The position numbers and the translations under genes are program-made. Source: Schizochytrium sp. TIO01 (lineage: Eukaryota; Protista; Bigyra: Labyrinthulomycetes). From it: a DNA stretch of 64,000 nucleotides. Positions 19,029-29,420 of the stretch are shown here, piece after piece. The stretch is from positions 186,001 through 250,000 of the forward strand of contig SMSO01000004.1 in NCBI GenBank assembly GCA_004764695.1, read 5' to 3'. Under the pieces are notes generated by a model. It was not told the DNA's origin. It saw nothing but the letters and a program-made list of their open reading frames with translations, and did no database searches. Every line of letters begins with the position of its first letter. Positions within the stretch are counted from its first letter, which is position 1.

Positions 19029-22000
19029 ATGAGCAACAATGACCACTACCTCTTCCGCACTCTGCAACAGCTACAAAATGGCCAAAGTGATGAAGACGCG
19101 CTTGCAGCCGCAGTTGCAGCAAGCCTAGCCGAATCTGGACTTGGACCTGAAGAAGGTGAGCAAGTTATTGTTCGCCGCCTCTCTAACACGGGGAGCGATG
19201 AGGATGATAGCAACGCTGAGAGCGATGATAACGATGATGACAATTATGAAAATGACGCAGATAACGAGGAAGAGGACGATGACGGGGATGAAGATGGTGA
19301 CATTAGCGGGAGCGAAGAGTCATCTGATAATGATAATAATGATGGAGGCACCTCAAATGAGCCCAGTAACAGCTCAGATTCTGAAAGTTCTAGCAGAGTG
19401 GGAAGGCAAGGTGTAGCTTCGCGTTTTCGGAGAAGAATAGGAATACGAAAAAAGAAGGATAAAGCATGCGACCAAAAAACGCTAGCCTACATAAAAGACT
19501 GGGCAAACAAGGTTGAGAGCCTGGATGTTGAAGGTATCAACCGAACTGTAGAGGCGCTTCTACAGGCTTCACCATGTCTTGATTATGGCAAAGAGTATGA
19601 TTCTGATGATGGTGTGGTAAGCGAATCTAGTTTAATTAATGAGCTACTTCATTCCATCGAGGCATCTATCAGCGCTGCAGATCTAGCCAGTGTTGGCTTT
19701 TGCACAATCGAGTCATTGCGCAATATAAATCACTCTAGTCTACGTTCAGTAGGTGTCCCTTTTTTTGCAGAAAGAGACAAAATAATGACCTTGTTTCAAA
19801 ATCAAGATTATGAGGAGCTGAAGACCCGAGCGGCACTAGCGCAATTTGAACCTGAGGATCTTAGCGATGATGAAGGTGATGATGCTCTCTTGGATGGGAG
19901 TGACGAACATTTCATTATTCGGGAGACACTTCGACAGATTGGCATGAATGATGCGATTCCTATTTTTGCGGAGCAAGGGTGGGTTACATTAGAACTCTGT
20001 CGAGTTTTGACCCATATCCAACTCCGCAATGCAGGTTTTCACACTTTCAGTAGCCGGCATGCCATTATCTCTGCCTTTGAGGATACCCGAAATAGAAATC
20101 GCCTCGAACGTGAGCGGTATGAGCGACGTGCAAAGCGCCGCAAAAACCGTCTGAGATTGTTACGAAAAGAAAAAGAAGCACGTGAGGGGCCTCCCCAACT
20201 TCTTGGTCTACGTTTAAAAAAGGTCCTGAAGATCCAAGGATTCTCCCCGCCAGCATTCCCTCTTAATTTGCGGTGTTCTGGTGATGTAGAATTCTTTGAT
20301 TTGGTGATGCCCCCGGTTGACCCGAATCAAGTCTGCTGGAAAGTAGACAACCTCAGTCTGACAAGAGTAACAGGTTCAGCAGACTGGCTACGGAGTTTGG
20401 CTGGTATTAAGCAGGTTCGACTAGAAAGCATCCCTGATGCTGAGGAAGCTATTGAAGCTTTGTGTGAGGATGATGTTCTGTCTTGCCCATCCTTATCTAT
20501 CCACTCGTGCTCTGGAATTGAAGCGATCTGCGAGACTATTGAGTGCGACACTCTAAAAATTTCCTCGTGTTCAGATCTCCGGCTTGTTTCCCAAAATCTG
20601 AGCTGTAAGTTTGATATGGATGTTAGTTACAACCCAATGCTTCTCACATTGTCTCAAAAGGCGCTTTCTCTCGGCCGAAGCTCGATAACCTCGTGTCAAT
20701 CGTTGGAGTATCTTTCCCCAGAGACAATTTATTTGTCAGGGAGCATTACGATGAATAACAACCAAAGTCTTTTAGCTCTAACACCTGATGAAGCCATAAT
20801 CAATCCATCTTCGCCTAGAGCAGCGTTGGATATCCGTATCTTCAATAGCAATTTAATGGAGATGGTTGCGGAATCAATACAATCTTCTGCATACGAGCAT
20901 GTCTCAATTCAAATTGATGGTTCGATCCTTTCCCGTGGTATCTGCCCAGGGTCCGTGGGGTTGTATTTTAGTTCGTTGGACATTAGCCAGTGCACACCGC
21001 CGCAATATTTTGCGCTGGATGATGCAGATACTGTAACAAGCGATTGCACTGTTTATAGCCCGCATGACAGCGACTCAAGTGATGATGAACTGTCATGTGA
21101 CAACTCGAAAGTAGGCATCGAAGAAATTCTCAAGGGCCTGAGGTATCAAAAGTATCTTCCCGTGTTTGTTCATCATGGCTACACTACACTTGAGAAATGT
21201 GCGACCTTGGATGAATCAACATTACGGGATTGGGGTTTACGTGACAAGCAGACTCAGAACACTCTCGTCAAAGCATTCAAGTCCGTCGGTGAAATGCGGG
21301 AATTGGCATCTTTTATTCCAGTGAGATCAGCCCTGATTCGCGCGGGATTAGAAGGTTATATGTATATCTTCCTAGTTCACGGAATTACGAGTATAGAAGC
21401 ATGCAAAGGATTAAACCAAGCAGCGTTGCGCTCATATGGTGTTCCAACATTTTCTGAGAGAGAGAGAATAAGAAACGCTTTTTTAAATGAAAGTGATGTT
21501 GATGGTTCCAAGAAAAACCGGGACATCGAGACAGAGAACTTTGTGAAAGAAATGCTCGCCTTTGGGGAGGAACACCACTCTGAAAGTTCAATCGTACGTT
21601 ATGAAGACAGTTTCATACGGGCTAACTTTGTATCTGAGTCTTCGTGTAAAACTCTGGGGACCTATGACCTTTTTTCTCGTCTGGGGATTACTTCACCAAT
21701 TGATCGTACTGCTATTCTGTGGGCTATTCAGGAATACCCCGTCTTTAAACAGCGTAGTAAAGATGGAGAGCAAGACAGCCAAGGAGAGGAAGGAAGAATC
21801 TCGGCTGCTACGGAAGGCTCAGATGTTAGTAGCATTGTCTCTATGGAAGCCTCGACAAGACTTGCCGACCTAGAGCGTGCAACATGTAACGATCAGACCC
21901 GTAATCAGGACAGAAACAGTGAAAACGATGATCAGGAGTCATTACCAAGTCTTGACAGCACGAGCAGCGCTGATCGTGAACGACAGCTGTTTAGAAAACT

Positions 22001-29420: not shown

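Follow-up and report, generated by a model that had tools for sequence, protein, structure and literature searches.

LRSAM1 is an animal E3 ubiquitin ligase built from leucine-rich repeats (LRRs), a coiled coil, a SAM domain and a RING. The NEL ligases are, judging by the title of a 2022 review, a 'bacterial' family (PMC9320238), and a review dated October 2026 treats them as enzymes of proteobacterial pathogens, Salmonella and Shigella among them (PMC13720258). In IpaH and SspH, the LRR restrains the NEL domain (PMC7728815). A further paper mentions a NEL domain in NLR-like genes from a green alga (PMC7145615). A literature search that ran largely without subscription journals found no description of eukaryotic NEL families or of NEL–U-box tandems, nor any report linking IpaH with thraustochytrids or a novel E3 ligase with dinoflagellates. 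The gene analysed here lies on a stretch of 64,000 nucleotides (nt) from the thraustochytrid Schizochytrium sp. TIO01 (contig SMSO01000004.1, positions 186,001 to 250,000; hereafter the window) and encodes a predicted protein of 3463 amino acids (aa) that combines LRR blocks, SAM arrays, a NEL domain and a U-box-like tail. Both the NEL–U-box pairing and the full SAM-array architecture appear to be new to the searchable literature.

The TIO01 genome contains a family of at least 18 NEL genes, of which this one is the largest. It is probably a real nuclear gene of the thraustochytrid, apparently expressed as one transcript, that would encode a giant cytosolic or nuclear NEL-type E3 ubiquitin ligase. 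The features that bear most directly on this reading are the following, in window coordinates.

18061..29548, + strand: approximate contig extent, probable transcript; ends extrapolated from the contigs of runs X1, X8 and X5 (starts 18079, 18061 and 18851; ends 29548, 29537 and 29688)
19029..29420, + strand: single open reading frame (ORF) of 3463 aa, stop codon counted in; the frame is intact in allele P0001 from other assemblies
28587..29153, + strand: NEL catalytic domain, aa 3187-3375, from Pfam PF14496 and alignment to solved structures
28764..28766, + strand: predicted catalytic codon, Cys3246, in a Cys-x-Asp motif, aligned to the catalytic Cys of SlrP and SspH1
29196..29369, + strand: U-box-fold domain, aa 3390-3447, from the family profile, AlphaFold2 (AF2), Foldseek, a second aligner and the family motif

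The NEL assignment is supported by several comparisons. The Pfam family PF14496 matches the whole protein with 87.7 bits (9.4e-25, aa 3189-3375) and the corresponding piece with 92.7 bits, for a cut-off of 24 bits. Among solved structures, SlrP (7.4e-9), SspH1 (3e-8) and IpaH proteins are matched by the C-terminal 314 residues, and the alignment puts Cys3246 at the position of the catalytic Cys in SlrP (4puf) and SspH1 (9h6w). Furthermore, the Cys-x-Asp motif is kept in 17 of the 17 other NEL copies of the genome. The NCBIfam equivalog models of SlrP, IpaH and SspH2, whose cut-offs are 1113, 550 and 1243 bits, give 31.1, 28.5 and 23.5 bits, respectively, and all three matches end around aa 3373. 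A Protein Atlas search with the NEL region returned unrelated low-score clusters only. Homology predicts a ubiquitin ligase activity that would depend on Cys3246.

The NEL domain is followed by about 90 residues that are conserved among the paralogues. A profile of this tail family, compared with all PDB sequences, retrieves the ends of IpaH NEL domains first and then the U-boxes of E4B and Prp19 (E 0.3-1.1). The AF2 model of aa 3366-3463 (pLDDT 85.5, pTM 0.71) shows a beta-hairpin, a central helix and a short strand followed by a helix. The top 48 Foldseek rows obtained with this model are U-box and RING domains nearly throughout, with Prp19 (2bay; probability 0.99, TM 0.65 on target, rmsd 2.5 Å, 57 columns) followed by E4B/Ufd2, LubX and OsCIE1. 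A second aligner (VIA) places the C-terminal domain of AvrPtoB (2fd4) first, with a Z of 6.6 over 76 residues, and U-boxes next (Z ~4). The E-values of the tail are modest, as expected for a domain of 60 residues, and the list of matches is uniform. According to these models, the C-terminal tail has a U-box fold, i.e. a RING-like cross-brace without zinc ligands. The U-box motif is found in 99 of 152 family representatives, Rhabdochlamydiaceae proteins among them. A complex prediction that combined the tail with a UBE2D-like E2 (L032:1489-1929) scored 0.00 with 'no answer', controls not being run, and gives no evidence either way. The gene of this E2 (L032:1489-1932, + strand, on G000:C24) is intronless and encodes a UBE2D/Ubc4-like protein of 147 aa.

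The frame at window 19029-29420 (+) contains zero internal stops. As a 10.4-kb open frame at 46% GC is also kept in a second allele, chance is excluded. The host contig measures 2.3 Mb and belongs to a 64-Mb, 37-contig genome of a thraustochytrid-like protist. The neighbouring frames encode a MYST acetyltransferase, an LRR-IQ protein, an alpha/beta hydrolase, an acid phosphatase, a MAP10-like protein and an ankyrin-FN3 protein, and none of them shows signs of a mobile island around the NEL gene. The upstream neighbour (window 10380-15437, + strand), an LRR and IQ-motif protein of 1685 aa, is unrelated to the NEL family by Pfam. Bacterial contamination was rejected on account of the 2.3-Mb protist contig, the eukaryote-type low complexity and the eukaryotic neighbours; an assembly artefact was also rejected, the same frame being present in runs from 10 studies.

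At least half of the sampled words of the gene are present in 20 runs from ten studies. In three of the runs, each from a different study, a single contig brackets the ORF (X1, 11455 nt; X8, 11462 nt; X5, 10823 nt), and each of these contigs is collinear with the window over 23450-29449, without joints. The contig sets of X1, X8 and X5 total 36-48 Mb each; the contigs of X15, a DNA-like run (65 Mb), break at a 9-nt repeat described below. The runs X21-X24, which share studies or a species label with gene-holding runs, contain almost none of the sampled words, which could reflect condition-dependent expression or low depth. The bracketing contigs, the small contig sets and the gene-poor sibling runs together indicate transcript contigs, and therefore a single intron-poor transcript is probable. 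The bracketing contigs start up to ~970 nt upstream of the ATG (window ~18061-19028), and this segment would be one of three things: an unusually long 5' leader, an unrecognised upstream exon or intergenic read-through.

The earlier note on this DNA, made from the letters alone, had proposed a survey of paralogues for signs of expansion, and expansion was indeed found: at least 18 NEL loci in the genome, with open frames of 517-3468 aa, and relatives in Hondaea, in records labelled Durusdinium and in MMETSP. The U-box tail is present in 16 of the 16 paralogues whose frame reaches the C-terminus. The N-termini of the paralogues vary, consisting of SPRY and LRR, Arm, LRR or nothing recognisable, and a SAM domain is found in none of the other 17 NEL copies of the genome. 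Three NEL–U-box genes (L017, L018 and L027) lie within 17 kb at G000:C24:1949952-1966773, two on the minus and one on the plus strand, which suggests family growth by tandem duplication.

The search with the NEL domain and tail over 1.84 billion representatives returned 458 clusters at E <= 0.001, 73 of them at E <= 1e-30. The named members of eukaryote type are from Hondaea fermentalgiana, from records labelled Durusdinium trenchii and from MMETSP transcripts. The automatic names of the Hondaea fermentalgiana proteins include 'Ryanodine receptor', 'Nephrocystin-3', 'Disease resistance protein TAO1' and 'Tubulin beta chain', and those of the Durusdinium trenchii-labelled records IpaH, SspH1, SlrP or importin. 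In the precomputed Pfam annotation of the eukaryote-type relatives, NEL is fused to kinase and TPR, tubulin, HAT/TPR, Arm, SPRY or LRR modules. As the NEL–U-box follows so many fused modules, it is considered to be a general catalytic module in this lineage. In three cases, the automatic name hides the ligase: the NEL cassette is joined to a protein kinase and TPR in P0025 of Hondaea fermentalgiana (Nephrocystin-3), to a tubulin domain in P0167 of the same species (Tubulin beta chain) and to HAT/TPR repeats in P0164, an NCBI record (PRP6). Among the Durusdinium trenchii-labelled records, P0003, P0014 and P0021 fall inside the thraustochytrid clade, and P0062 and P0064 near the base of the eukaryote-type side; either the family is common to dinoflagellates or labyrinthulomycete sequence is present in that assembly.

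Candidatus Rhabdochlamydia and Rhabdochlamydiaceae supply the named relatives of bacterial type, which are recorded as 'NEL-type E3 ubiquitin ligase domain-containing proteins' and likewise carry the tail motif. The consensus of the Rhabdochlamydiaceae tail starts with Cys-x-Ile and ends with Gly-x-Asp-Pro, which presumably resembles the classical U-box. Locus scans of bacterial and archaeal genome contigs with P0097 and P0099 yielded no confirmed locus, and the bacterial range of the NEL–U-box type rests on a few database names. In the FastTree tree, eukaryote-type and bacterial-type rows lie on opposite sides and the Rhabdochlamydiaceae form one clade with a support of 100; this tree carries local support values only and several long branches, and sets neither the root nor the direction of transfer. 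Sequence comparison thus points to a NEL–U-box subfamily that expanded in thraustochytrids and whose nearest nameable bacterial relatives are LRR-NEL proteins of Rhabdochlamydiaceae.

The conservation of the NEL–U-box tandem, which is shared by Rhabdochlamydiaceae proteins and at least 16 paralogues of the protist, bears on a bolder proposal. The tandem could be an undescribed two-step ligase in which the U-box docks the charged E2 and hands its ubiquitin to the NEL cysteine, as RING1 does to RING2 in RBR ligases; it would be an effector-type machine that a eukaryote domesticated and diversified, combined here with a SAM polymer and LRR sensors as a platform for cell-autonomous defence or surveillance. 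This proposal, taken as a whole, is regarded as doubtful.

The composition of the family also bears on the function proposed by the earlier note, a convergent LRSAM1/NLR-like immune receptor. In such a cell-autonomous sensor, the LRRs would sense a ligand of bacterial or viral origin, the SAM domains would build a signalling polymer and the NEL domain would ubiquitinate the invader or a signalling target. The family is expanded, its recognition modules vary and three of its genes lie in a tandem cluster, a pattern common in immune families, and the association of LRR, SAM and E3 follows a logic that resembles that of LRSAM1. However, the NEL cassette is also found with tubulin, kinase, HAT/TPR and Arm modules and looks like a general-purpose E3 family. 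The NTPase switch domain of NLRs is also absent. Indeed, NTPase, RNA-binding, chromatin, RING and zinc-finger domains were sought with Pfam on the whole protein and on ten pieces: no NACHT or NB-ARC match was obtained at E <= 1, no RNA-binding or chromatin domain was detected, and there was no RING or zinc-finger match. The proposed receptor finds no direct support, the NTPase domain and LRR hypervariability (see below) both being missing. An immune sensor is considered possible, at a low probability.

The remaining features occupy the part of the protein upstream of the NEL domain.

19086..19136, + strand: UIM-like motif, aa 20-36; full-length, sub-threshold matches to Pfam UIM and UIM_2; similar motif at the N-terminus of L021/P0002
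19149..19433, + strand: acidic Ser/Asn-rich low-complexity tract, aa 41-135; D+E+S+N ~66%
19623..20090, + strand: SAM repeats 1-2, aa 199-260 and 293-354; from Pfam, phmmer and a self-iterated hidden Markov model (HMM)
20250..21098, + strand: block 1, degenerate LRR-like or beta-solenoid, aa 408-690; several weak concordant lines, none decisive
21105..24467, + strand: SAM repeats 3-14, aa 693-1813; from Pfam, phmmer and the self-iterated HMM
24801..26696, + strand: main LRR block, aa ~1925-2556; ~14 recognisable units
26706..27164, + strand: Ser/Arg-rich then acidic linker, aa 2560-2712; defined by composition, carries a 9-nt tandem repeat
27180..27359, + strand: three regular LRRs, aa 2718-2777; from the unit HMM, 20-22 aa each
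27366..28478, + strand: long linker, aa 2780-3150; Ala/Gln/Lys-rich, Ser-rich, acidic and basic stretches

The earlier note had read these features, together with the NEL domain and the tail, as one polypeptide of 3463 aa, and the architecture that it described is right in every element. The single polypeptide agrees with the stop-free frame and with the single contigs of three studies that show no joints over the 3' 6 kb, the RNA status of these contigs being guessed. The acidic tract, the linkers (an acidic one and a Ser-rich one, both by composition) and the 2 + 12 SAM repeats are found as described, the count of 14 units being exact by the self-iterated HMM. The long LRR block and the final LRRs are recovered as ~14 and three units, LRR_EndoS scoring above its cut-off. 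The NEL domain exceeds its Pfam threshold more than amply and its Cys3246 aligns with those of SlrP and SspH1; the U-box-like tail is upheld by AF2, Foldseek and the second aligner, despite the missing Pfam match. Two elements are less firmly recognised. The UIM-like motif is matched over its full length by UIM and UIM_2 but falls under the 21-bit cut-off, and the first LRR-like block is backed by homology to L021 and by weak matches that lean towards LRRs but has no Pfam match, so its fold is not proven.

The N-terminal motif (aa 20-36) scores 15.3 bits (E 0.018) against UIM (PF02809) and 14.7 bits (E 0.034) against UIM_2. These are the sole Pfam families returned for the first 45 aa alone, both over their full length (1-17/17), and the motif agrees with the published UIM consensus. 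The SAM arrays are much more clearly recognised, with 124.7 bits (1.6e-36) for SAM_2 and 90.7 bits (7.8e-26) for SAM_1 over the whole protein, both over the curated cut-off (PF00536 / PF07647), and SAM matches are found in five separate pieces of the ten scanned singly. A phmmer search seeded with a single repeat recognises 13 units, and the HMM iterated on the protein itself 14. The mean pairwise identity of the repeats is 21%, which indicates that the array is old; it does not correspond to any tandem repeat in the DNA. The SAM arrays are bordered by two Arg-rich stretches (aa 355-400 and 1830-1900). The long linker (aa 2780-3150) has no family match in Pfam scans of the pieces. The linker that precedes the final LRRs contains a perfect 9-nt tandem repeat of 4.3 copies (window 26954-26992), which encodes a Glu-Thr-Asp run; the allele from three other studies has one unit fewer, and the DNA contigs of X15 break there.

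The Arg-rich stretches are among the elements that would fit an endogenous regulatory or scaffolding E3 acting outside defence, in which the SAM array and these stretches tether the protein to a polymer, RNA or chromatin and the LRRs pick endogenous substrates for turnover. SAM arrays that are independent of NEL elsewhere in the genome (a SAM-only protein and a myosin-SAM gene, described below) point in the same direction. Furthermore, cultures of several studies seemingly contain the gene, and no challenge experiment is recorded for any of these studies. Against this, no RNA-binding or chromatin domain was detected by Pfam, and the lack of an orthologue of similar length in other sequenced labyrinthulomycetes would be unusual for a core regulator. 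Such a role is held to be rather improbable; in its general form, a regulatory function is about as likely as an immune one.

The main LRR block matches LRR_EndoS with 33.7 bits (cut-off 27.9) and LRR_RPS2 with 8.7e-6, both within aa 1900-2560, in the Pfam scan of the pieces. Its best match by sequence among solved structures is the LRR of a plant TIR-NLR (7crb, 6.5e-7), and this proximity to plant NLR LRRs is one of the points in favour of an immune sensor. The final LRRs are 40-50% identical to LRRs of many family members, and the LRR-unit HMM recognises ~17 units, of the L-x-x-L-x-L-x-x-(C/N)-x-x-L type, across aa 1930-2556 and 2718-2777. A simple LRR regular expression, with 16 matches versus 6.9 expected, was too coarse and was replaced by this HMM.

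Block 1 (aa 408-690) is more difficult to classify. It has no Pfam match, and the LRR-unit HMM gives only one weak match. It is homologous to its counterpart in L021, with 25% identity and an E-value of 9e-10, or of 5.5e-07 to 1.2e-06 against a larger set. The AF2 model, based on an alignment of two sequences, is mostly beta strand (pLDDT 58; 70-85 across the first ~180 residues). The Foldseek matches are weak (E >= 0.46) and dominated by LRR proteins, and the nearest protein-language-model clusters are LRR families. Block 1 is thus probably a degenerate LRR or a beta-solenoid.

The origin of the SAM-array version can be approached through L021 (G000:C35; allele P0002, 1850 aa), the sister of the gene in the FastTree tree (SH-like support 99). 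The two proteins share four segments in collinear order, namely block 1, the main LRR block, the final LRRs and the NEL–U-box. The N-terminus of L021 carries an acidic-Leu-Ala-Leu-Ser motif resembling that of the larger protein, although Pfam returns no UIM match for it, and L021 is devoid of SAM domains. A scaffold like L021 (UIM-like motif, LRR, LRR, NEL and U-box) may have gained SAM domains at two points, 2 before block 1 and 12 after it. From the sequences compared, the insertion of SAM arrays into such a scaffold would be the simplest history of the gene.

A SAM-only protein is encoded at L030:655-7899 (-) (G000:C33:4366500-4376499) by an ORF of 2414 aa in which Ser/Arg-rich linkers separate at least 16 SAM domains and Pfam recognises nothing else; this protein could be a partner of the giant NEL protein or the donor of its SAM array. 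The locus adjoining this SAM-array gene (L031:3294-9950, - strand; G000:C33:4376500-4386499) encodes a protein with a myosin head, IQ, PH and SAM.

Searches restricted to long proteins found no orthologue with the full architecture other than the allele P0001 of the same species, and other sequenced labyrinthulomycetes yielded none of comparable length. Likewise, among the database matches, the same-species allele P0001 is the only one with precomputed SAM and NEL together. Among the proteins searched, the SAM-array version thus appears limited to this species group, a restriction that would suit an immune sensor. An unlabelled JGI protein of 899 aa (P0008) combines a single SAM with LRR and NEL; its position elsewhere in the tree indicates that the SAM, LRR and NEL combination occurs on a second branch of the family. 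The earlier note had stated that it knew of no described protein with such an architecture. This holds for the searchable literature and for the full SAM-array version, but the gene belongs to a family of at least 18 genes and P0008 shares SAM, LRR and NEL.

The allele P0001 (3458 aa) is 98.6% identical, with 42 residue substitutions and 5 in-frame gap positions over the whole protein. Over 6 kb, the other allele differs by 45 substitutions (0.75% of sites) and an in-frame deletion of 9 nt. About 25 of the 45 changes are nonsynonymous and about 20 synonymous, giving a pN/pS of ~0.4. The NEL/U-box region shows a single substitution in 313 aa; the densities elsewhere are 9 (LRR block), 17 (SAM array) and 79 (acidic linker) per 1000 aa. 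The pN/pS value and the near-invariant NEL/U-box indicate purifying selection, a point in favour of the giant ligase in general and of a regulatory role. Conversely, a pN/pS of ~0.4 counts against an immune sensor, as does the absence of LRR hypervariability between alleles, the LRR block being less variable than the SAM array; no sign of LRR diversification is seen in a comparison of two alleles that has little power. The runs nearly without the gene, which come from the same studies as others that contain it, would fit an immune sensor if they reflect condition-dependent expression.

The same data bear on the idea of a recent chimeric gene with little or no function that is now decaying. Its restriction to one species group, the large share of low-complexity linkers and the repeat-length polymorphism would be expected of such a gene. 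However, the 10.4-kb frame is intact in two alleles that are 0.75% apart over 6 kb, the NEL/U-box region is almost invariant with an intact catalytic motif, and the SAM repeats, at 21% mean identity, are old, so the array is not a recent accident. A decaying chimera is therefore very improbable.

If the protein is indeed a NEL-type ligase, its mode of action can be outlined by reference to better-known families. Cys3246 would take ubiquitin from an E2, form a thioester and pass the ubiquitin to a substrate. The LRRs could choose this substrate and may hold NEL in check, as they do in IpaH and SspH. The U-box might help to dock the charged E2, the SAM array might make the ligase multivalent or polymeric, and the UIM might bind ubiquitin.

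Several points weigh against this reading of the gene as a transcribed giant ligase. The catalytic activity is predicted from sequence, and the roles of the SAM array, the UIM and the U-box from other families. The UIM-like motif scores under the Pfam threshold, the fold of block 1 is uncertain, and no family at E <= 10, the Pfam U-box PF04564 included, is returned for aa 3366-3463. Furthermore, the RNA status of the runs that carry the gene is a guess, and read collinearity covers the 3' part (23450-29449).

Globally, at least 18 NEL ligases are encoded by a eukaryote that is free-living or saprotrophic; each complete copy carries a U-box, and the gene described here is the most extreme among them. 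Provided that the proteins are active, NEL would be a class of eukaryotic E3 ligases too, the added U-box would raise a testable question about how NEL domains engage the E2, and the chlamydial link would argue concretely for an exchange of genes between protists and intracellular bacteria. As thraustochytrids are culturable, experimental study should be feasible.

Among known systems, LRSAM1 is similar in uniting LRR, SAM and an E3 module in one chain. However, the thraustochytrid protein has NEL and U-box in place of RING and 14 SAM domains instead of one, and shares no homology with LRSAM1 beyond domain classes; the resemblance is an analogy only. The NLR/STAND receptors have a central NACHT or NB-ARC, unlike this protein, in which Pfam finds neither. 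By analogy with SARM1 and other tandem-SAM oligomerisers, the close SAM pairs (aa 199-354 and 693-822) could build a ring or a polymer, although the TIR and ARM domains of SARM1 are lacking. The fold of aa ~3390-3447 agrees with those of Prp19, E4B/Ufd2 and the bacterial mimics LubX and AvrPtoB (C-terminal domain). In contrast to these U-box proteins, the domain has no Pfam U-box match and sits directly behind a Cys-dependent ligase domain.

IpaH, SspH1, SspH2 and SlrP share with the protein an LRR located N-terminal to NEL, an aligned Cys-x-Asp and a Pfam NEL match far over the threshold. Whereas IpaH, SspH and SlrP are secreted bacterial effectors, the gene described here is a eukaryotic nuclear gene with eukaryotic neighbours and low-complexity linkers. 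Its product also differs from the IpaH type by a U-box, a region where solved IpaH chains do not align, by 14 SAM domains, by a UIM-like motif, by a second LRR-like block and by a linker of ~400 aa before NEL. The NEL proteins of Rhabdochlamydiaceae (e.g. MGR3911938.1 and WP_404665485.1) are shorter (560-930 aa), lack SAM and UIM, form a separate branch and are ~28% identical over the NEL region, but, like the thraustochytrid protein, they associate LRR, NEL and a C-terminal U-box-like motif, and the LRRs are homologous.

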